From Auanema rhodensis (Eukaryota; Animalia; Nematoda): a stretch of DNA of 64,000 bases. The stretch spans positions 13,268,001 to 13,332,000 of the forward strand of contig OZ059898.1 of assembly GCA_964057225.1 (NCBI GenBank), written 5' to 3'. The position numbers were made by a program, and so were the translations under genes. Under the pieces are notes generated by a model. It did no database searches and was not told the DNA's origin. It was given only the letters and a program-made list of their open reading frames with translations. Shown piece after piece: positions 6,748-48,550 of the stretch; positions within the stretch are counted from its first letter, which is position 1; each line of letters opens with the position of its first letter.

Positions 6748-9700
6748 ATGGAAGATCTAATATGGGATAACATTAACGAAACATTGGATACGTATGAGGT
6801 AAGAGATTAATCAACATTCAAACATACTTCATATTTCAATTATTATTATTATATTTTAATTAATTTAAAATATTATTATTCTTCACTGATGTCTGTATAT
6901 GTAGATGAAGATGTCTATCATCATCGCCTTCCTTAATCATTTCTTTTTTCAGAATTATGATGATGTTCTATTACATGATCCCTTGGTTCAATGGACTACT
7001 GTATTAGTAGCTGCTATATATATTCTGACTATGATTATTGGAATTCCGGCAAACATTTATGTGCTCCATCGTATGCGAAAATTAGCAAAGTACGTTATTT
7101 AAGGAAAAATAACAAAACCCCTAATTCCATTATATAATATATGATACATTTCATTAGATATAGTCGTTGAGAAAAAAATATTCATGAAATTACTTATGCT
7201 ATCGAACTGCTCATTAAGTTTTTTTGTGTTTCTGTTGCGCGGGAATAAAAACGAATTAAACGAAAATTGGGATAGAAAAAAATAAAAATAAATTTTTTTT
7301 TGCTTAAGAATGCAACCGATTTATCTAATTTTACAATTTTAAATGGATGTTTACAATGTCATGTGGATTTATTTGACGTGGGTCTCACGTGCGTGACATA
7401 CAACTACTAAAATTAGCATAATACAAAAGCTCTCGCTATTTGTTTATCAAATTGCTTGCAAATTATACAATAGTATAACAAATTCGAAAATAATGAATAA
7501 ACAGTATAAATAAATTTGATAATTATAGCTTATATATTTATATTTTTATATCAATTTCTAGTCTTATGGTCATTTTTTGCAGAAGTGATATGGAACGATA
7601 TCGCAATGGTACCGGCATAGCTCTGTGCTCTATGTCAGCAGCTGATTTATGTTCACTCCTCTTAATTTTCAGCCAAAATATACATCAATCGTTTGCCGGC
7701 GAGTCAAATAGCCAAATCATGCACGTAACTTGCAAGGTTCTGTTTCCGATTTTCTTTTTTTTTTCGAAAAAAAAAAGAAAGAAAAAAGAATAATTTTTAT
7801 CTCAAATCATATAAATGACGAGAAAGTGGGAAAAGCAGAAAAACGGACTGAACGAATGATAAGTGAGGTACTAGTGGGTGTATGATGCATCTTGTTTTCA
7901 AATAAATGTTGCAACATACATAATTTTCAATGTTTTTCGTCATTAATATCTAGAGAAATCTCTCCACCATTAAGTTTTTAGAATGAAACTAACAATAACA
8001 AAATTTCACGTCACTAACACGTCAAACGGAAAATGACATTTGCATTTAATATTTCGTATTTATTGTACTCTGACAATCTTCGTTAACAGAACGTCAATTT
8101 ATGACAAAAAAAGAGAATAGAGAAGAAACATGAAAAAGATACAACTTAAACTTTGAAACCGAATACCATTAATCTCTAAGATTTTTGATTCTTTCAAAAA
8201 AATTATTTATATCATCAGGTTAATTAGCTGAAATTTTGAAGAAATCAATAAAACTTCTGAAACTATTTTGAATACATCAAAGGTTTGAGGGAGAATCTTC
8301 AATAATACTACTAGTTTTCAGATTATGCTGTTTTTAACTCACACGGTTACTGGCATTTCTATTTGGTCTTGGCTTCTCCTATCTTCCCTCCGATATCTAG
8401 CTATCTGTCATCCTCTTTATCATCTTCGCCTCTGGCAGATGCCATATAGAGCCTTGGCTTTTATTATTGTAAGTTTTTCTTATTCTGAACTTTGCTAACT
8501 ATGTTGAGAAATAAAGTTAAAAGCATTGAACATCTAAAGCACTATATGCTCTTTTTTTGAAAATTCTATAATGTTAGTATACAGTACTGATAGTTTGGAA
8601 CTTTTGATATTAATAAGGAAGTAATGTTCATATTTTCCAGATGATGTCTATTTTGCTCAATCTGTGGCTCCTAGTTGCTGTAGAATCAACTCCTTTCGGT
8701 TGCACTCAGGTAATCTATTTATCTCTGACCTTCTAGCTATCATGCAATCTTAAAATCTTTTTTAGGTTTTGTTGATACGAGATTCAATGACCGCTAATCG
8801 TCTCTTTCATTTGGTTGAAATGATTTGGTCTTTTTGTATTCCACTAGTTGTTATCGTCATTATGGACACAAGCGTTTTAATTAAAAGAAAGTAAGGAAAA
8901 TGCGGTTTATAATAAACTAATGCTTATGATGACAACCTAAAACGTTTGCAAAAACTGAAAATATATTCTCTAAATCTGCCAACATGTCGGTCTCTTTGGT
9001 CCCTTTCTCTCAGAGGGACGTTTTTGGTCTCAACTAAATTCTAGCTGCCGAGATTGCTCTGGTAGTCTAGAGCTTTTCCACATTTTACACCCTCGAGACC
9101 CATCCTCAGACTCATGACCATTTATAGTCATTTTCTAATGATTTATGTTCTCTGTTCAGCATATTTCCACGATGGGTCCGCCAAAAGCAAAGACGAAAGT
9201 CAGCATTAGAAGAAATTATCAAACTTACCCGAAGCTCCAGTATGCGACTCAAGGTAAATCTTGAATAGTTAATTGAATATTGTGAACAAAAACTAAGAAT
9301 TGGCTACTACAGCCGCAGTATATTTAAAAATTTCGTTGAAAATTACAAGTTTTGAAAACTATATTATTGAACCGCTACCTCAGTTCCAGCATCGTCATCA
9401 GAAGGCATTGTGGAAATGGCTCATAATAGCATTTATCTGCATTCTGCTCAATGCCCCAGAGAATATATATCGCCTTGTTATGCTTTTCTCCATCTCAACG
9501 TTCACAGAAGAAGAAGATGCCATACATTATTCAGCCAGAATGGTTGCCCAATCTCTATATTTTAGGTTTGTCTTCCTGCTGCTTTCATATTAACATAGCC
9601 ATTTTTCTGATAAACAACAAACTGAACATGAAAGATCACTCATTCACTATCTTTCACCAACTATTATTTCAGCCAATTTGCCTTTAACGCCATATATCTT

Positions 9701-13788: not shown

Positions 13789-19188
<5,400 letters not shown>

Positions 19189-34988: not shown

Positions 34989-36272
34989 GCCCAGCCTGTC
35001 TGACCGTTCGTTTAGTTTTCACGTTGATATCCTTCGCCGTCTGACGTCACTCGATGACGTCGATCGTAATTGTCCCAACCGTTGCTGTGTGCACGGGTGC
35101 TGTTGCAGCTCTTGCCGTGCCTTTCATCGCGCTCCAGGAAATCCTTGAGAAAAGGTTTGTCCACCCATATGATATACGTTTCACGTTTTGATCGGATCTC
35201 TGTTTTCCTTTGTTCGGCCTACCTTAAAAAGAATAAAACCATCGATGAAGAATAAAGATGACGAGTCATACACATCGTGATGATACCGAGGCATTTGTCA
35301 GATGATGGTTTTTGAAATTATTGGAAAACTAGTTTAAGCATTGTAATTAATGTTTTTGTTTTAGAATGCGCAAGAATATGAGGAAACACCTTAAAAGAAG
35401 AAGTTCTTGTCGTGAGTTTGTTGATAATTTAACCACTTCAACTTCTATAATTAGTATTTGAACTTGTGAACTTGTCAAGTTTGAGAGTTTCAATAAACAA
35501 CTTTACAGGGTTACATTTTGGAGAACTTTCATTGTCGCATGAGATGCAAGATGACAAAAAGAAAATCATCGGATGTGATGCCAGCATTACATCCAACAAG
35601 GTTTAATAATAGTTTAATTATGTGCAACATGAACAACTCAATTACAGTCTAATCCACCAGCATACGAGGACATTTTCCGTCCACCACCACCATACGTTAT
35701 CAATCAGAGTCGGACATAATTCCATCAAAACTTTTGAAAGCTATTCGACGACATACCATCTATCGTCAATCATAATCGATCAGTCAACCACATCGACTGA
35801 TTCGAGTGACGTCATTTTCTAGACTTTTGTATTATTTATGTAGTCCCCACCCCTTTCTATAAAAATTGCTTTGCCAATTTTGTAATTTCGAACTGTTCAG
35901 CCAGGCTTCCCGGAAAATCTGACAGGGCTTCATCCATATATGGGCCGTGGATACTGCCGTCGTCTGTCGTATGTCGTAATTTCTGCCTAAATTTTCCTAG
36001 CAACTGCTTCACATCGCTTAAATCCATTAAAGTATTTAGATTTGCGAACAAATTATTTTTTTTTTCAGTTTTTCTTGCTTCAAAAACAACGCCGAACAAT
36101 TATATTTTAATATATTGTATTTGTTTATTAAATATTCTAAATAGAAAATCTCTTAGAGAAACTTAACGACAGTTTTCAAAAATACCCGTGAATATATACA
36201 AAATAGTTTGAGCAATATGGTTGATACTCTTCACACTTTAAAAACATTGTAAATGATTGAAGAGAAATATTA

Positions 36273-36282
36273 AGAGAGAGAG

Positions 36283-36337
<55 letters not shown>

Positions 36338-36346
36338 TAGAGAGAG
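36273..36346. repeat. (GA)n microsatellite downstream of the kinase gene
   Basis: Interrupted GA run. Confidence 0.93.
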
Positions 36347-36458
36347 AAATAAGGCAAGATTTTTTTGAGAAAACAATAAATGTACAACATACAATGGCTA
36401 AGTAAACTTCAACGATAATTCTAGCGTGACTAGAAGCAATTAAGAGATAAAGCTAGGG

Positions 36459-37827
36459 TCAGAGAAGTATTTTAGATAAGAAGGACTCTACAAAACTATT
36501 CGGTTGATCGACATCCGATGAAGAATCAGATGAATTTGTATCTTCACCAGTACTATCAGACGAATCATCATCCATGCTATTAAGTGATATATTCCTCACG
36601 TCACCAAGCAAGTTATCCTCAACTGATGAAGAATCTGAATTATTACTAGTTCAAGTTGATAACAAGTATCAAAATTCACCTTCTGATAGCATTTCAAAGA
36701 AGTTATAACTAGATAGGTCAACATCAACATTCAGGAGTGGAAGTTTATTTAATTCATTAATACTTATACGAAATGTTGAAGTTGGATGTAAGCAACTTCG
36801 AAGAACATCACTCATTTCTAGAAAAAAACTTTGATGAAACTCAAACTTAATTATAGTTAATACCTTCTGATACATGGCTTCCTATAGTTAGATTAGCATT
36901 AAGAATATCTTGTTGTGTATGAAAAGGATAATCATAATGAAATAAAGTATACAGAAGTATCCCAAGAGCCCAAACTTCTTGTTCAGGACCACGAAATCTT
37001 CAAGAAAAGTCATTGATAAAAGTTTTTTGAAAAGAAATCACACACAATTCCTGTCGAAGAACTTCAGGACTTGCACATTGAGGTGAACCGGAAAACGAAG
37101 AAAAAGCTATTTGAGGTCCGAAATAGGCTGCAGATCCGAAATCAATGAGAACACCTGAAAGAAGTAATTTCATCAAAATTGAAGTTTGAGATTGTTTATG
37201 AGCTAACAATTGAAATCTGAATCAATTACAACATTCTCTTCTTTGATATCGCCATGTAAAATGTTCAACGAATGCATGTATGTTACAGCTGAAGTAACCT
37301 AGATATCAAGTTGTTAGTTGAAAATAGGCTAAATGATCTTTAAACCTGACGGAATATATGAGAAATCAGTTGTTCATTCAATTGAGGTTGACGATTAAGA
37401 AAGTCAAATAGATCCATTCCAGCTTTTCTTCTATCAGTCACAATAATGAAATGAGATGAAGTTTCGAAGAAATCGACCAACTACACAAAGAAAAATGTTA
37501 AACTCAGAAGAAAACATTCAAAACTTACTTTAATAATATTTGGATGACTAAGATGTTCTAAGAGATATATCTCAAGTGGAACCAGATGGCCAGGCTTCCG
37601 TTTGCTACTGACCCATTCACCGTAAATTTCATTGACAGGTATTACCTTGGTGACTGTCTGAAGAGGCAAAAGAAGTAGTTTTCGTATTAGTTCTTGATTC
37701 TTATGAATGAAAGTTTAATTACTTCTTTTCCATCAGATTTTCTTCGGCTTAACGATATTGCACCAAAGTTTCCATTTTGTAAAACAGCTGACGTTTCATA
37801 TTCCTCAGAATAAACATCTACATTCAT
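36459..37827 (-). CDS. PAS-kinase (PASK)-like Ser/Thr kinase domain without a PAS domain, with an acidic Ser-rich tail
   Basis: [75 protein letters not shown] and [10 protein letters not shown] parallel PASK kinase-domain motifs. Possible extra 5' micro-exons at 38330-38352 and 41244-41280. Confidence 0.85.
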
Positions 37828-40184
37828 CTGAAACGAAAAATCACATTATTTTGTTGAAAGTTCAAAAACTTTTTGAAACGAAACACAAAAATAAAGAAAA
37901 CTTGCACAAGAAAAAGAGGGAGATATAAACAAGTTTGATGGCTTAATAAGCTTATAAGGCTTGAAAAGTTTATATAATTTGTTGCCAAATTGCTGATATA
38001 GCAGATATAAGTTTCGATGAAATATTAAAAAAAAAGCGTACATTGAAATAAAAAGAAAAGGTGCTTTTTTCTTGAAAAAATAAAAGATTTTTGCCTTTTT
38101 CTCGTACAGATAGGTGAGCAGACAGGAAATGCTATACAGCATTTACACATGTATACGCACATGCGATCATGAACTAAGATATAATTCTGGCAAATAATAA
38201 CAAAAAATAACAAAATAAACTAAAAATAACACAAATATTTTAGAATTTTCGATATTTTGTATGTGAAACCGCTGCTGCAACTAAGGACAGCAAGCGAGTA
38301 ATGAGAGAGACAAAAAGAACTCTTCTTACATCCGAGCAAGACAAATGAAAGCCTGAACAACTTTTTTTCAAGAAAAAGAAAAGGAAAAAGAAAAAAATGT
38401 CACTAAATAGAAGTTCATGTTCTCTAATAGAATCACTATAAAAACCTCAAGGAGATTAGAAGTATATAAAAGCTTGATGATGAGCATGATGTTGCTCTTG
38501 GTTTTCGTATTGGCTTTTGTGCCCATAGCAACGAGTACGCTAAAAAATACTATGAGAAATAGCTTCGTCTTTTCCAGGATAATTGCAGGTTATGAAGGGT
38601 CAAACGTTGGAAAAAATTGTCAAAAACGGGTGGAATGGATATCCGGTAGGTAGGTCAATCAGCTGCACAGACATGGGCATGACTATTAAAAAGAACAAAG
38701 ACAATAAAAAACAATATTTTGTAAATAAGAGGATTTGAACAACATTCAACTGCTATATGATATAGTAGAGACATATATGGAAGCTTAGATATAAGAAAGA
38801 GAAAGCAAATATATTTGGAAAAGGTTATATAGCAGAAAAGAGAATAATCGTAAAACTTATATTTTATGATTGTTAATTAATTTAATAATTTGGTTGAAAT
38901 GCCCAGAACATGTCCATTGAGGGGTGGGGAGTCCGTATATGCAATAAGAACAGGTGTTATGAAACTAATAGAAGCTAATAAAGCTGTAGGCTTAAGAAGA
39001 GAGAAGATTGAAATAAGTTTTAAGAATACGATGCTACAATAACAAATTGACGAGTGGAAAGTAGGATGGAGAAGAGGAAGTATGAGATACGCATATATGG
39101 GATTGATAATGATATGAGAAAAATAATATTAAAATGACATAATATGAAAAGGAAATCTAGTAGGAAATTAGAGGAAATTGAAAAATTATAAGTTTAAAGA
39201 GAATAGGAATGAGAGGCAAATTATACCAGATCATGAGAGAATTGAAAAGAAAGTTGAATGAAATGCAGCAGGAGAAGTATGATGATTTCTGAAGTAAATA
39301 GCTAATAAATAACTTTTTTTTATTATTTTCTTTCATGACAATTGCAAAGAGCATATGATTAGATAGATTGATAGATTAGTGTGGCACGCGTGATAATAGA
39401 CGAATTATGTCTGATGACGATGAGACGAAGACGACAACGACAACGATGACGATGACGACGATGGTAAGAGAAGAAAGAAGACAAAATCATATTATCAAAC
39501 AAACCAGTCCAGGATCAAATAGAAGGTAATAATCAATTGAACAAGATAATAAACTTTTAATTAGTGAATGATCATAGAATAAGATATATGATCAAAAGGG
39601 AGAAGAAGTAAGAGAGACAACAGAGCAACACGAGAGAAATGAGAACGAGGTGGAGTAGAAAAAGGTGCAAGAGGCCAACAACAAAGAGAAGATGAATAGA
39701 GTAATGATCATACAACATTGGTAAGTTACATACATACTAATGTATTTCAATTGATTCAATCTAAATAAAAATGTTTAAAAAACCGAAAAAGTTAAATGTT
39801 TGATTGGTGATGAAAAACAACCGGTCACCGCGATTAAATGTTAAAAAATGAAAAATGAATGAGATGTTAACACAGTTTGACATGGAATGATATAGGGTTT
39901 CTTTAGAAATTAAAAAATGGAAATACTGCTTTGAGGTGTCAATTAAGAGAAAGAAAGAGAGACAGAGAGAGAGAAAGGGAGGAAGACAAAAAGAAGAAGA
40001 AAGAGACTTAGAGAAATACAGAAAAAAATTCGGGTCAAGCGTTATCTACTCTTTCACATTTCTTCAAATTTTGGTGAATTCAGTTATAATTTAATTTAAT
40101 TATATGCCTCAAAATGCTGTGTGAAGTTAGAAAAAAATATGTTTTTTCTGATTTTTCTTAACTTAAGAACAAATATTAAAATAT

Positions 40185-40186
<2 letters not shown>

Positions 40187-40231
<45 letters not shown>
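40187..40231. repeat. (GA)n microsatellite
   Basis: Perfect GA run. Confidence 0.95.
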
Positions 40232-40234
<3 letters not shown>

Positions 40235-43200
40235 GAGGAACCGACGGATAAGAGCTAGATAAGAAAATACAGATTTATATACTATCAATTAACATTGTTT
40301 ACTATGTATTACAAGAGCAAGAGCTAACAACTTCAATGAAAAAGGTTTTCAAAAGTAAGTTCACAAATAAATGTTTGACACAAGCATTGTAATATTTTAA
40401 AATATTTGAAAAAATTCAAAATTAGTGTAATGAATGGTTTAATTCTAGTGATGTGACAGATATAAGCTTAGCTCACTTCATATTGTGGGAAATCGGCATT
40501 TTCATAGCGAAAGGGCAGAAATATAGAAAAGTATTAGGAAAAAACGATTATCGTTAGTCCAACTAGAGAAAGAGCCACCCAAAATTGCATTACATCTCAT
40601 GAAAAAGATGCTCATTGATTTTTCTATGACCAGTAATATAGAGCGGAACAAAGAGAATGTAAGCATGAGAGTTGTCCAAAGAGGAAGAGAAAAAGAGAGA
40701 AAGAGAAGAAAGAAGAGAATGTACGAGATAAAAAGAATAGTTTCCGACATGAACTGCAGATTTCTATTATGGGAAAGCAAACGGACAAGGGTTTTTCCGA
40801 AATTTCCACATGGAAGAGACAAAACAAATCCTGATTTGAACTCTTTTGAGCTTCTCGTCTGGAATATAAATCAATTTCAACCAATTGTGTTTATTCGTAA
40901 GACAAGGAATATGTTTAGATTATGCTGGATGAGAAAGGGAAATGCCGTTAAGGTATGCATTGGATTGCAACTATTTTTCAGAGATATTGCTATGGAATTC
41001 ATGGGATATGACTAGAAAATCAAGACAAGTTCAGAGTTTTTTCGGATCTTGAGAATGAAGTAGGCCATTCCATTAGGAGACAATAAAGAAATTTGATGAA
41101 TAAAACAAATTATAGCAATGTGTATGTTTGATAATCGATCAGCGATTTATGTTTGAACAAAGTTTTTTTTTCAAAAAAAAAGCGTTTGAAAACTCATTAC
41201 TTTTATAACAACAAGATAAGACAGACAAAGAACTGGGGATTACTTATGATCAAAGATCGAAATGATTTGGAATTTGACATAGCAGTATAACCTCGCTGAA
41301 ATCGGTGGGCATATCTTTGCCGCGAAAGTCTATATCGTTTTCGACCGACAAAGCTTGTCGTCAGAACATCTGGAGTGTTTTAGATAGAAGCAGGGCAGCT
41401 AGTTCCATCTACTTGAGATCCGGAAACAGATAATGGAAATTGACAGCTTTTCATAACATTTTTGATGAAAAGTAGCTAGCTAACTGGGTTGTTGATATTG
41501 GCTGATGTTCAATGAATAGGTACAAAAGAGTGAAGTGTTATATCAAAAAGTAATAGAATTTTCATTAAATAATTTCAACCAAGAAGTCACAGCAGAAGAT
41601 CAGAGGTCATCCAAGTAAGTAGTAGCCGTAGTAGTAGCCTCTCTAGAACTAGTGAAGCCTCAGCATTGGTTTGTTTGTAATTTCAGATGACTTAGACTGC
41701 ATGTGGATTTGAATTGATTGAAAGAGAGCTCCATGAAGTCCACATATATGATGCTGAAATGCAGGTTGTTGCCCATAAGAGCAAGGAAATTAGAGCTAGG
41801 GAGAAGAAGGTTGATGTTCTTTTCTATTTGTTCATATTTCCATTCATGTCTTCCAAATATCCGATTCTGCATGGTGACGGGTGTATTAGATTTCGTATTC
41901 CAAGCGTGAAACCATTAGAAGAACCTATCAAGATCCGAGAGAAAAAATGGGTAAACAATGGAAAAAAAACTGTTGAACATCTGTTGATTGGCCTTAGGAC
42001 ATTCAAAACACTTGAAAACCAATGGGAAACATCAATTGATAGATGGGTAGGAAATGTGCTCTTCAAAGCAATGCAATACTAAAACCTTCTAGCTTCAAAC
42101 AGAAAAATCTGTGATACACGTTGGATTGGAAGCTAAAATTTATTTTATCAACTTACATGTAGACACAACGAAAATGGAATATATGCGAGTGGCAAAGCTG
42201 GAGAAAGTTTGAACAATAACAAAATAAAAAAAAGAAGTTTGATCGTTGTTTGAGATGAAGAAACGACTGACAAGAAAGTGAGACGTTAGAAAATAGTGAA
42301 AAAAAATCATTTGTCCTCCTCTAGAAGGGGTAATAGTTGGAAACATGAGGTTTCTTAACGAATCGTTCCTGAACCGAAGATTTTTTCCAGGACGTCGCAA
42401 CAAAACTGGTTGCCAAATAAAGAAGAAAGATGAGATGAGATAAGATGTATGGTTTAAGAGAAAGACGAGAAAGCAAAACGATGAAACCAAGTCTAAGTAA
42501 TAAGAAGGAAAACCATGGAAGAAGTCGACAAAGAAGAAAACGAAGAAGAGGAGATACATTTATGCTTGCGAAATATTTCAAAGATAAATCATATAAGCTA
42601 AGGATGCAACATTTGCCTAAATCGAATATTGCGAGGATTTTGAAAAAAAAGGAGAAAATTGAAAACTAATGGGAACATGAAAGAAGTGAATTCTTTAAAG
42701 ACGGCGAATATTTCGGAGAATCGAACTAAGAAATATATGTTGGGCAGAACCCAAGAGCAAATATGACTAGATGTTCTGGATGAGTCATCGTCGTTCACAA
42801 TAATATAAAAATAATTAAAATGGCCAGCTCTTATTGGTGATAGAATGAGTAAGAATAGAAGATAAATTCAAAATGTTTCGAAGTATCTAAGCTTACAACT
42901 TAAAGAAATTGGATAATTATAGATACTGATGTTAAACAACAATGCAGCATTCAGGCATGCATTTAACCTTTAAAAATAATTTTCTCTGAATAAGCATAGT
43001 GAACAAAGGAAAAGGAAATAGATTAAGATAAAATAAGTGGGAAAACGGAATTACAAAATAGTGGTCGGTAAAAGTACATGAATGGATCAAGTAGTAATTC
43101 ATTTGAAGCATAAACTTCAATGAACATTATCAAAAGATATTCTGGAAGAGTCAAAACAAATGGAAAACATCAAGCTAGCTCATATCTTTGATTAGGTATT

Positions 43201-44271
43201 CGTGCTTCGAAACCATAATGTTAAAAATGTTTCAATTGAACAGCTAAATAGTCATTTATTTAAACAAGGCTTGCAACAAGAGTTAGCCGTTCTAAGCAAA
43301 CACATAAGGCTGGAAAAGTGAATGAGAAAAGAAATTATTTGTAAATGAATCTGCCGGCAAAACATAGTTCATATTCAGAAAATAAAAACCTCAACCTAAT
43401 ATTGCCGTACCTTAGGACATAGCACAAGTTTTTGTTGCTGGCCAATAGCTAAGGGAAATGCATTGTCGAGACAATGAGAAAGAATTTTTAATTCAAAACA
43501 CCGATATATGGGAATTAGATGTAAAAGGGCAAATTTTTAACAATGTATTACATCAACTCAATATGCTGGAAAAAGTAAGAGAAGTTGCAACTGAAAAATA
43601 AAAAGAAAAGCGAAATCTGGCTACTATTCTCATCAATTTGAAAGCAAGCAGACGACTAATGGGAAGACAATTAAGTAGCCAGTGCAGTCCGATGGTGAAC
43701 TTGCTGTCTAATGGACCTCCCATGAGGACATCCCGAGGATGGATAACTCTTTGTAGTTTACCAAAGTATAACAACATTTTCTTCTCTATATAGCTAGCGA
43801 TGCCAATAGTTTCATTAAATCAGAATGAATTAATTGAAATTTTTCGTTCCGCTGACAGGAAGGTGTAAACTAACGTATTCTTGGCTTTTCTTATTCATTC
43901 ACACATTATTCAACTTGTCGTTATTCGAAACTTTTTACCAATAATTTCTTCTTCAAATCTATAGCTTTGATAGTTTTAATCAAAGCGAAGCTCATTGAAA
44001 CATATTTATGTTTCTTATGTATTCTTATCTTCTTATTTCTGTTAGGTATCTAGCAATGCAAAAATTCTGTGAGTCTTTTGATAAAATTGGAATTATTCAA
44101 GATATAAAAAAATTCTACCTTCATTATAAGCCATCTGTAAAAGGACAGTGAGCAACAACTGAAATAACAACTCTGGTAAAACATACAACAATATCACTGG
44201 GAAGTTGATAACAGTATAGTAACAAACGAGCCAAACATGAAAGTTAAAACAATAAAAATAACATTTTGAAC

Positions 44272-47200
44272 TTAGGATGAAAGAAGTTCATGTAACTTAT
44301 CACGTTTATCTTCAGCAAGACCGGCGGCCTGTAAATTATAGTTTAACAGATATAACTTGAATTCAAATTTACCCCAACAATATTTTCTAACACTCCATTT
44401 TGTTGCATCATTCTCAAAATATTAACCAAACGTCCCTTGATTTCTGTGGATTCCTCGTTGAAAGCATTGAGTGTAAAGGCGGATACAACTGGAAGTATAT
44501 GATAATAAAAAGATTTCAGAAAATTTTCTTACTGATATCTAATATCTGGGGGAGATGAGAATTATCAGGTCCAAGACAAGCAGGATTGTTGCTCTCGACC
44601 AAATCGCACAAATATCCATAAATATGTGGGGATTCCTCCTCATCCTCATAAGTAGGTAACCAAGAGAAGAATGTTGGTATAACCTAGAAAAACCGAAACT
44701 CATGGAAGAAGAGATTACAATATTTACCTGATTCAAATCAATATTTCCCTGAGTATATTTTAAAATTTTAGCGACAGCAGCAATACCATTCTCGGTAGCA
44801 ACTGCATCTTCTTCAGTAGCACGAGCATCAGGTTTGTTAATCATAACAGCCAAAGGCTCTAGAGCTGCAGAAACAGCATCTTGGAAATCGGCACCTCCCT
44901 TCATAGCCATAACTCCGAAACCATAGGCAGCAGCTTGACGAACTTCAGCATATTCATCCCCAAGGCATTTCATAAGGATTGGTACGATTTGTTGTTGAGC
45001 ACCAACAATACTCTTGAAAAAAAAAGAAAATAAGGGTCTAAAATTTCTTTAAAACCTTAGGAGAGAATTCGATAATATCATCGAGCATACAGATACCCCA
45101 TTGGCGGTCAGTGTAATGTCTCTTAGAATCAATCTGAGCAGCAATTTGTGGTAAAAGTGGCTCCACATATGGGAAGAAGACTTCACCAATAGTCTAAACA
45201 TCTTAAGATGGAAAAACAATACAAATCCTTTAGTCTTACTTCAAAAGCTGAATGGATGATGTCGCTCAATCTAGCCATGACGGCAGCTTCTCCCTCCATT
45301 TCTTCATCAAGGATTTCCTTAGCCTCCTCTGGATCCTCATCCTCATCAGCTTCCTCAGCCTCGCGTTCAAGACGTCTGCTTTCATATGCCTTGAACTGAG
45401 ATTGCAGCATAGTTCCAATTTGTTGGATATCTTGAGCAGATAATCCCTTAAAACATCAAAATTATAGAAACAATTCAAGTTTTGTAAATTTACAGCAGCT
45501 CCCAAGATTCCAATACTTTCAGATATAGCATTAAGGAATTCGGAAAGAACATCAGCTTCCTCCTCTTCGCTCTTACTAATAGCTTCCACGAGTGCTGGCA
45601 AGAAGATATTCCAAAGAGTTCTCATAGCTTCGATTCCCTGTCCCTTAACACACTCCATGAGACATGGCATGGTTTCAGCAGCAGAAGCACGGACACCATC
45701 GTGGAACATGAACTTAAGATGATCAACCATCATTCCACTGATCTTCTCAACGTATGGAATAAAGGCTTCTACAATAAAAATAAATATTAAACAAAAACAC
45801 TTTTACAAAAGACTAACCTTTCATGTCACGAGCGTAACAAACAATCATCTCGCAAGCAGTAGCTTTCTCTTCGAGTCCAGAAGTACGGATTCCGAATGCT
45901 TTGTTGTCTCCAACAGAAGTATATTCCCATGCGCCATCATCATCTTGAACCTCGCTTTCTTAAAGAAAAAAATAAGATACATTAAACTTTTTCTTAAGCG
46001 AACCATCAACAATAGCAACTTGTGGGTTGTAGCTGGCAGCTCTGAGAAGTGGATCCATAACAAGAGGAAGGAATGGAGCAAAATCGGGTCCAAGGACCTA
46101 TGTTTATAATGCAACAAAATGAAAACTAAAAGTAGCTTACTCTGCAAATTCTAGTCCATCCACTGATCATGTAACTGCATTGAGGATCATCTGGAGAAAG
46201 TTCAGGCATAGAAGAACTCAAGAGCTGCATAATATTAACAGCATCAGCTCCGAACTTCTCCTTTCCAACAGCAAGACCCATAAGAGAAATGCATTCGATG
46301 GTTTTTCCTCTGAGAGTCTGAATAATGCAAATGAAGATTTTCTATTATTAGCTGGAAAAAATACCTTATAGTTTGGTTGGTCGGAATGTTGGAGAATGTA
46401 CTTCAATGGGGGCATAAGTCGATCATAGAATTGGATAAATACTTCCTTAGCGGCATCGGCAACAGAAGCAATTGTGGTGATAATCTAAAAAATGATTTAA
46501 AACATCAAAATTCTCATAATGTAACAAACCTGCTCCAAAACGACCTTAGTTCCCTTCTCTTGAAGAATTGAGAAGGTCGTCTCAAGGACAAATTCTAACT
46601 TTTCCATGATAACGGGAAGGTAAGGTGTGATAACCTGAAAATATAGTTTAACAAAGAAAGCTAATTTAATTACGTAACCTGTTGAGGACAGTCCTCGCTG
46701 AAATTAACCAAGGCAGCTCCAGCATGAGCACAGACACGGTAGCAAGAAGTATTGTTCAAAGTATTGAGGAGACCACTGATAACTTTCTCGTGGCACTTCT
46801 TTTGAAGAGTAGGGCAGAAATCGGAAGACATTTGTCCCAAAGCATTGCAAGCAGCATAACGGACACGAGGATGGGGATCTTCCAAATAAGGAACGACAAT
46901 ATGAACTACTTTCTCGATTAAAGGTTCCATTGTGCGCTTGCATCCTTCTCCAACAGCAGAAATACCCATAAGAGCAGCATGTCTTTTCCTCCAATCAGCT
47001 AAAACAAAAATAAAATGAAAGGATAAAAAATAAAGAAACTTACAGTCAACCAAGAGCTTCTCAGCAATATCAATGAATGGCTTAAGAATAGCCTTTCCAT
47101 TCAAAGAACAAGAAATACGGTCAAGAGAAGTTTCACCAACAGCAACATTACTACAAAGAAAAAATAGGTAACAAAATTACGGCAAAACTCTCACTCTTCT

Positions 47201-48550
47201 TCGATATCCTCATCCTCAACATCATCAACAGCAAGCCAGTCTTCGATAGCGTCATCGAGCTCAGTCATGAGAAGAAGAGCAGATTGTACTGTAAATATAC
47301 AAATATAAATACTGTAATAGAAAATGAAATCTTACACATTATTGGGATAAGATCGCTAGCTCTCTTTTTAATAGCATTGGGAGCTGATTCACAGAAAGAG
47401 GTGATAACCTCCATAGCGGAGTTGCGGTAGCTCTCTTCAGTTTCAGTGTTGGCAATAATCTTCAAAAATACAAATAAATTGAATCAAAAAAACTATATAT
47501 TACATTAGCGCAAAGTTGAATAACGCTGGCAACATGAGGAACAGCAATCTTGGGCACAGTGCTTACAAGATCAGCAAGAGCTTGAAGTGGTCCGTCATCT
47601 TCTTCCTCTATTTCAACTACATGCTTGCAAACCTTAAAAAAGAGAAATATATTAAAAGTTAGAAAGTTAAATCACGAACCTCGAGAATAGCTGGAACATC
47701 TACTGAAAATCCTTTGATGAGTTTATCTTCATCTTCGTTAAGACTAACGAAGGCAACAAAAGCCTTAGTGGCTGCAGATCTAACAGGAGCAGAAGGATGA
47801 ATAAGGCAAGAATGAATCATTTGCTAAAAAAAAAGATATGGTACAAACAGGAAAAAATGAGCAACCTTAATTTCATTCAAATATTTATCCTGTTCTACAC
47901 CAAAAAGATTAGGAACAGCTCTTAAAAACAGAAATTGATAAAACAAAAAAAAAAGAGAACCCACTCAATGAGAAGCATAGCCGCAAGTTTGAGTTCAGCA
48001 TCATCACTCTTAACACAGTGGTCAACGTATCTAACAATATCAGCCCATTTTTGAGCTCCGGTGTTTTCATCTGAGATTATATTATCATCAAGATCAAATA
48101 GCCTTAATTGTATTACCAATCATTTCACGAGCAACCTCAGCAATAACATCTCCTAATTTCTTACGAAGAAACAAATTACTTTCCTTCATGCTAGCTTCTA
48201 AGACCTTAAACCAAAAACAATATTTTCATTTCTTCGTTTTAGATACCTCGTTGGCAAACTTTAACATTTTATCGTCGCCTACAGCCTGGCCGATTTCTTG
48301 GAAACTATTGGATAAAAGACGACGCAAAAGAACAAGACACATAGATCGAACCTAATAGCAAAAGTATAATTCAAAGCAATTTTTAACCACAAACCTCTAA
48401 GTTAGCTTCGGATTGCTTGTATAATTCAAAAAGAAAATGTGCCTTTACATCATTAGAAAGTTCATCATATACTTTTTCGGCTTGTGTTCTCTTTTGGTTA
48501 TCTTCTGATGAGATTTCAGCAATGATGGTATGAAAATGAACGAGATCCAT
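44272..48550 (-). CDS. imb-3: Importin-5 / karyopherin beta-3 (HEAT repeats), multi-exon
   Basis: [95 protein letters not shown] and [12 protein letters not shown]. Confidence 0.96.

Follow-up and report, generated by a model that had tools for sequence, protein, structure and literature searches.

PASK is studied as a PAS-gated kinase, and a descendant without PAS domains would be a natural experiment on what the kinase core needs when it stands alone. Assembly of PAS-C with the PAC motif, together with a tether of PAS-A on the activation loop, has been argued to be necessary for full PASK activity, and PAS-A was proposed to stabilise that loop (PMC11962487). In the same work a human PASK fragment without PAS domains was weakly active, phosphorylation of T1161 was not needed for basal PASK activity, and a PAC motif 63–69 amino acids (aa) before the kinase domain was described 'in all metazoan PASK' (PMC11962487). 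As to nematodes, PASK 'is not found in C. elegans' (PMC3247726); this sentence was the only statement that we found in the literature on nematode PASK and kinomes, and a PAS-less form with HGD in place of HRD was not found described there. Here we analyse a protein-kinase gene on the minus strand of a 64,000-nt window of the nematode Auanema rhodensis (GenBank assembly GCA_964057225.1, contig OZ059898.1, positions 13,268,001 to 13,332,000; positions below are those of this window unless a contig is named). The gene encodes an expressed stand-alone kinase of 338 aa, and we consider it likely, though by no means assured, that it is a rhabditid (clade V) descendant of PASK which has lost all N-terminal regions, evolves fast and is predicted to be catalytically competent.

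Three-frame translation, read together with the DNA of 36400–37960, gave a model of eight exons with a coding sequence running from 37827 to 36459, in which all seven introns are GT..AG and 45–65 nt long, and Pfam recognised pieces of Pkinase in exons 3–6 in the correct order. The RNA evidence consists of assembled contigs from four runs of one study, for which the run type was guessed as RNA; because spliced contigs can come from RNA alone, we take these contigs to derive from RNA. In a search of sequencing runs, these four contained 42% of the words sampled from a 2-kb stretch, which is close to its exon share. When the contigs were aligned to 36301–42300, each run yielded one contig of 1160–1169 nt, and in all four runs the seven introns had been removed exactly as modelled. 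At the 3′-side, an end of the protein at the TGA of 36669–36671 was considered and rejected, because the RNA uses the donor GAAG/gtgaat, splices out 36635–36679 and adds a tail of 57 aa. The contigs extend ~40 nt past the 3′ untranslated region (UTR), into an AG microsatellite at 36273–36347. According to the RNA, the whole feature covers ~36354–37834, a much shorter extent than the 36459–41280 given by an earlier annotation made from the sequence of this window (hereafter the initial annotation).

All four contigs share a 5′ limit at 37834, 7 nt before the ATG, and these 7 nt differ from the genomic GTTTCAG by one mismatch. The spliced leader SL1 ends with GTTTGAG, so that one mismatch to GTTTCAG is the expectation for an SL1 trans-spliced mRNA. 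Moreover, the 22-nt SL1 sequence, with at most one mismatch, occurs 3451 times in the 181-Mb genome, far more than the roughly 100 SL1 copies of C. elegans; most occurrences lie in tandem arrays, including those at C3:6741531-6766485 and from C3:14134320 onward, with periods of ~252 nt and ~341 nt. Because of this abundance we regard the worm as a nematode with a canonical SL1. The acceptor that abuts the ATG is probably an SL1 trans-splice site, with joining of the leader at 37827 suggested by the single mismatch and by the abundance of SL1. No transcript contig was found on 37900–42300 within the 36301–42300 that were covered. Two upstream exons (41203–41280 and ~38330), through which the initial annotation had extended the protein by 20 aa, have to be given up: they are without RNA, and the second ends CTCGGAT/GTAAGA and cannot supply the 7 nt observed.

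No PAS coding is detectable at the kinase locus. When the entire 181-Mb assembly was searched in six frames with the Pfam models PAS_9 and PAS, there were matches on contigs C1 and C3 only and none on C6 near the locus, in agreement with the initial annotation, which had seen no PAS-coding exons and had proposed such a scan of the upstream region. Searches of the window by tblastn, with N-termini taken from four PAS-bearing PASKs and from five PASK-like proteins of nematodes, yielded only chance matches (all E >0.4). A PAS-A profile from six PASKs detected nothing at any locus, those of Loa loa and Heterodera included, and is too weak as a stand-alone negative. A profile of the filarial PASK N-terminus was applied with a positive control, the Loa loa locus, where it detected seven upstream exons with E values from 7e-14 to 5e-29; it found no match in the window, the Mesorhabditis locus or the Heterodera locus. 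In total, five separate searches of the window and the genome, by Pfam, tblastn and custom profiles, were negative for PAS or PASK N-terminal coding, and the 181-Mb genome holds a single PASK-like locus. The mRNA begins at the kinase exon, and ~12 residues precede the kinase domain, which leaves no room for a PAC motif 63–69 aa before it.

It could still be argued that PAS exons exist far upstream or in an unsampled isoform or life stage, and that the short mRNA is just one isoform. PAS domains are poorly conserved, filarial PASKs are sub-threshold in Pfam as well, the contigs come from one study, and the transcript-contig coverage reaches 42300 in a spacer that extends to 44538. We hold this explanation to be highly improbable, since five independent searches were negative while the positive control worked, the nearest gene on the upstream side, at a distance of 6.7 kb, encodes HEAT repeats, a kinase domain starting ~12 aa after the Met leaves no place for PAC, and the two orthologues described below are also kinase-only, one of them (Mesorhabditis) with an acceptor directly before its ATG.

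When exon 3 was compared with a protein library, the best identities were 52–59%, and neither the window protein nor a close relative is in that library. The best whole-library match of this exon was P0001, a protein of 289 aa from Auanema sp. JU1783, for which an exact look-up returned no record. P0001 starts with MNEDVYS, compared with MNVDVYS in the window protein, has HGD and GSPQC, and by Pfam contains only Pkinase, from residue 13. Exon 1 corresponds to residues 1–35 of P0001, and the identities of window exons 1–7 to this protein are, in exon order, 60, 51, 51, 77, 80, 66 and 29%. The second orthologue, P0095 of Mesorhabditis spiculigera (325 aa), likewise contains Pkinase only, again from residue 13, and has HGD, and its Gly-rich loop has lost the third Gly as well as the first. 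Its gene has six of the seven window intron positions in common, the first three at identical codons, and carries TTTCCAG directly before the ATG; no PAS domain was found in its annotated neighbour genes. Auanema and Mesorhabditis are both Rhabditidae, and the database name of either protein is 'unnamed protein product'.

The kinase domain was compared exon by exon with labelled sets, and the separate best bit scores were summed over exons 1–7. The sums amount to 374 for the clade V orthologues, 293 for nematode PASK of clades III/IV, 280 for other PASK, 232 for fungal PSK-like kinases, 196 for PIM and 178 for PRK, and for each of the seven kinase exons the PASK score exceeds those for PIM and nematode PRK. 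In a comparison with PDB chains, exon 3 scored 33 bits with PASK (3DLS) and 21 bits with PIM1, while exon 6 was ambiguous (26.3 bits with PIM-2, 23.9 with PASK). With nematode PASK the window protein shares SWV.S.KR...VP.E..LLE.L.HPNI.K. The PIM-type hinge carries prolines (ERPxPxxDLFDF), and these prolines (ERPFPS in P0123, which reads ERPFPSIDLFEF) are missing from the hinge of the window protein. In a maximum-likelihood tree of 55 kinase domains (LG+C20+F+G4), P0001 and P0095 were used as proxies for the window protein. The Auanema and Mesorhabditis proteins form a pair (95/86) that is sister to clade III/IV nematode PASK (99/94), and together they fall inside metazoan PASK (98/95) and inside the clade of PASK and fungal PSK (99/95), separate from a PIM clade that includes the nematode PRKs (100/99). 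By the approximately unbiased (AU) test, grouping of the clade V pair with PRK was rejected (delta lnL 71, p=0.0011).

A divergent member of PIM/PRK, naturally kinase-only and constitutively active and not derived from PASK, would have the same architecture as the window protein, since PIM-type kinases are kinase-only as well. Exon 6 leans towards PIM-2 in the PDB comparison, and a sister position of the pair to the PIM clade as a whole gave p=0.108 in the AU test. We nevertheless think such an origin very unlikely, because all seven kinase exons favour the PASK groups over full-length PIM/PRK sets, the proxies group with nematode PASK and are rejected from PRK, the shared motifs are those of nematode PASK while the hinge prolines of PIM/PRK are missing, and other PIM-like candidate loci exist elsewhere in the genome. 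Descent from PASK is well supported, as judged from the exon scores and the orthologue proxies, although not formally exclusive. In this respect the PASK-like kinase domain of the initial annotation is supported, and its proposed phylogenetic check between PASK and PIM came out clearly against PRK but not against the whole PIM clade.

With respect to catalysis, all the motifs listed by the initial annotation are present in the translation. HRD reads HGD, so the RD arginine is gone; in the Gly-rich loop, LQNGNFGA, the first Gly is replaced by Gln and the second and third are kept; and the P+1 loop has GS where GT is usual, GT.EYC having become GSPQC. The Lys of VAIK, the alphaC Glu, the HxD Asp, the catalytic Asn, DFG, the APE Glu and the subdomain XI Arg are intact in the window exons, and the same set is whole in P0001 and P0095; the three proteins are only 30–58% identical overall, yet these residues are conserved. 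Since all phosphotransfer residues are kept in the three proteins, catalytic competence is predicted, and the kinase may need neither a read-out of activation-loop phosphate nor a PAS tether. HGD for HRD also occurs in a PSK-like kinase of a chytrid (Polychytrium) and in a clade of unnamed PIM-like proteins, and HMD for HRD occurs in Anaeromyces-type proteins. Because HGD recurs in other members, loss of the RD arginine seems to be recurrent in the PASK/PIM group, where, to judge from these sequences, the arginine seems dispensable. The proteins in this HGD/HMD comparison were P0135, P0106, P0164, P0137, P0139, P0153, P0128, P0144, P0141 and P0155, and also P0133, P0125, P0129, P0131 and P0132.

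The same changes could be read as those of a relict on its way to loss, that is, a weak or dead pseudokinase-like protein under relaxed constraint or with a non-catalytic role, for which Caenorhabditis would represent the final step. Branches four times longer than those of other PASKs, the loss of the RD arginine and of the first loop Gly (in Mesorhabditis of the third Gly too), the weak activity of human PASK without PAS and the lack of a detected orthologue in Caenorhabditis and in further clade V groups that are well sampled would all fit a relict. We regard it as unlikely, though it deserves to be taken seriously, because Lys, Glu, HxD Asp, Asn, DFG, APE Glu and subdomain XI Arg have been conserved at so low an overall identity, reading frame and intron positions are intact, and the gene is expressed.

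The series of events that we propose for a PASK descendant is as follows. In the lineage of this worm, Auanema and Mesorhabditis, the entire part of the protein before the kinase domain (PAS-A, PAS-B, PAS-C and PAC) would have been lost, and the mRNA would now start at a trans-splice acceptor that abuts the start codon. Thereafter the kinase domain would have evolved ~4 times faster than other PASKs, with HRD changed to HGD, the first loop Gly lost and the P+1 loop remodelled, and the activation segment would have come to read S-F-S-G-S for T-F-C-G-T and PQC for EYC. After loss of PAS and PAC, the product could be a non-RD kinase that suffices by itself, or else a weakened kinase. We favour a basal or constitutive kinase whose output may depend on its abundance, its partner proteins or its variable C-terminal tail, and the idea of the initial annotation that control has shifted to transcription is compatible with such a kinase.

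Several points weigh against this reading. The window protein itself is absent from the tree, so that its placement is that of the proxies together with the exon scores; the clade V branches are long, 1.33 and 1.44 substitutions per site as compared with a median of 0.33; and joining the two clade V proteins to the PIM clade as a whole was compatible with the AU test (delta lnL 20.9). Contigs may break at splice junctions, so a long isoform from a distant promoter is possible, and the covered stretch ends at 42300, short of the spacer end at 44538. Finally, human PASK without PAS is weakly active, so that the window protein, in which the Gly-rich loop is weakened as well, might catalyse poorly or serve as a scaffold.

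The features of the locus are collected in Table 1. The neighbour upstream, on the same (minus) strand at 44539–48100, encodes HEAT repeats and looks importin-beta-like (the open reading frame 46673–47104 matches HEAT_EZ with 52 bits). In the spacer between the two genes, the plus strand of 38500–43000 is purine-skewed, with a GC skew of up to +0.43 and an AT skew of up to +0.32, and the microsatellites of the spacer are of AG and AGAGAAAG type; no further feature was seen in these 6.7 kb. About 250 nt downstream of the kinase 3′ UTR and on the same strand, an 80-aa open frame without a Pfam match lies at 35857–36099; its spacing would fit an operon partner. Besides the kinase studied here, the window contains a second, unrelated protein-kinase gene of AGC type at 18090–18610 on the plus strand, which has TFCGTPEF and looks PKN/PKC-like.

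Table 1. Features of the kinase locus, listed from the upstream side (window positions)
Feature	Position	Strand	Details	Evidence
Upstream spacer	37835..44538		6.7 kb, to the 3′ end of the HEAT-repeat gene; no exon, PAS or PASK N-terminal coding detected	contigs to 42300, profile and tblastn searches
Acceptor	37828..37834	-	TTTCAG abutting ATG	genomic gtttcag/ATG; 5′ limit of 4/4 transcript contigs
Exon 1	37723..37827	-	35 codons from ATG; Gly-rich loop LQNGNFGA at 37762-37779	joint 37657/37723 in RNA
Exon 2	37529..37657	-	43 codons; catalytic Lys (TVTK, 37646-37648), alphaC Glu (PLEIYLLE)	sequence, RNA
Exon 3	37346..37480	-	45 codons; hinge region without PIM-type hinge prolines	sequence, RNA
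Exon 4	37208..37298	-	catalytic loop, HGD (CAT GGC GAT, 37248-37256) and IKEEN	Pkinase 29 bits; RNA
Exon 5	37046..37154	-	DFG (37135-37143) and activation segment, GS at 37084-37089	sequence, Pfam, RNA
Exon 6	36864..36997	-		sequence, PDB-chain comparison, RNA
Exon 7	36680..36817	-	kinase domain end: subdomain XI Arg, VDLSSYNF	joint 36634/36680 in RNA
Exon 8, coding part	36459..36634	-	acidic, Ser/Asp-rich 57-aa tail; stop codon 36459-36461	sequence, RNA
3′ UTR	36354..36458	-		transcript contigs

Elsewhere in nematodes, a profile search detected PASK-like proteins in Panagrolaimus, Heterodera, Ditylenchus and many filariae. The presence of PASK in nematodes is not new, as filarial annotations exist: a Loa loa protein is already named 'CAMK/CAMKL/PASK protein kinase' and a Dirofilaria protein 'PAS domain-containing serine/threonine-protein kinase'. 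The PASKs of clades III and IV retain HRD, GNGAFG and GTxEYCSPE as well as N-terminal extensions, and full-length filarial PASKs have 700–772 aa. In Wuchereria P0256, sub-threshold PAS_9 and PAS matches were found at residues 75–156, and the N-terminus of the Panagrolaimus protein aligns colinearly, although weakly, with the PAS-B/C and PAC segments of conventional PASK; in Heterodera, no N-terminal exons were detected with either the filarial or the PAS-A profile. In the Loa loa locus on JH712199.1 (7493–11144), the PASK model ('partial') is 5′-truncated and lacks the seven upstream exons, two of which are annotated as a separate 70-aa gene (7493–7786) and match the region of PAS-A. Within the nematode PASKs, a close partner of the Heterodera protein is P0172, which carries the label Sphagnum compactum and is probably nematode contamination of the moss assembly.

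No Caenorhabditis PASK-like protein appeared in the profile search, where the C. remanei match is PIM-like, and neither Caenorhabditis nor the other well-sampled groups of clade V yielded an orthologue, a result that is suggestive, as the searches were bounded by length filters and word sharing. The absence of PASK from C. elegans, to which the initial annotation refers, agrees with PMC3247726 but does not hold for nematodes in general, where HRD-bearing PASKs occur in clades III and IV. Hence PASK appears to exist in three states among nematodes, namely a conventional form in clades III and IV, a truncated form that evolves fast in some Rhabditidae, and absence in Caenorhabditis. It seems to us evenly balanced whether the truncated state is a 'minimal PASK' that arose in nature, in the first lineage of metazoan PASKs seen without PAS-A, PAS-B, PAS-C and PAC, with HGD and GSPQC as signs of a rewiring by which the kinase can do without the PAS tether, and whether it stands as an intermediate that links the conventional PASKs of filariae, tylenchids and panagrolaimids to the loss in Caenorhabditis. 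If true, it would be an exception to the statement on PAC motifs in all metazoan PASK (PMC11962487), and it would refine the textbook view that PASK is missing from C. elegans. We see in it a modest evolutionary and annotation finding and not a new kind of system.

Compared with PASK as represented by yeast Psk1/2 and human PASK (PDB 3DLS), the window protein has in common the kinase-domain sequence and, via the orthologue proxies, the position on the tree, as well as the motifs GxDLFxF(I/L)xxxPxLxExLxSxIFRQ, LIDFGSAAY, RGPExExW and a C-terminal V(D/N)LxxY. It differs in having neither PAS-A/B/C nor a PAC motif, in HGD for HRD, in the lost first loop Gly, in GSPQC for GT.EYC, in its length of 338 aa as compared with 700–1300 aa, and, for the proxies, in a very long branch. 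The clade III/IV nematode PASKs (Loa loa, Wuchereria P0256, Panagrolaimus P0168 and Heterodera P0170) are closest to the clade V proxies on the tree and share with the window protein an NC(K/V)-block and a SWV..KR..VP.E.HLLE block, whereas theirs are HRD, GNGAFG and GTxEYCSPE and an N-terminal region of 130–450 aa with PASK-specific segments; the weak PAS_9/PAS match of the filarial N-terminal region has no counterpart in the window protein, which is without such a region. With PIM and the nematode PRK-1 and PRK-2, the common points are the kinase-only architecture, a similar size, CAMK-type relatedness and, as predicted here, no need for activation-loop phosphorylation, but those kinases form their own clade, and the nematode PRKs retain HRD and the PIM hinge prolines. 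By descent, as far as sequence comparison can tell, the kinase is a PASK and not a PIM/PRK; by architecture it departs from PASK in PAS-A, the PAC motif and HRD.

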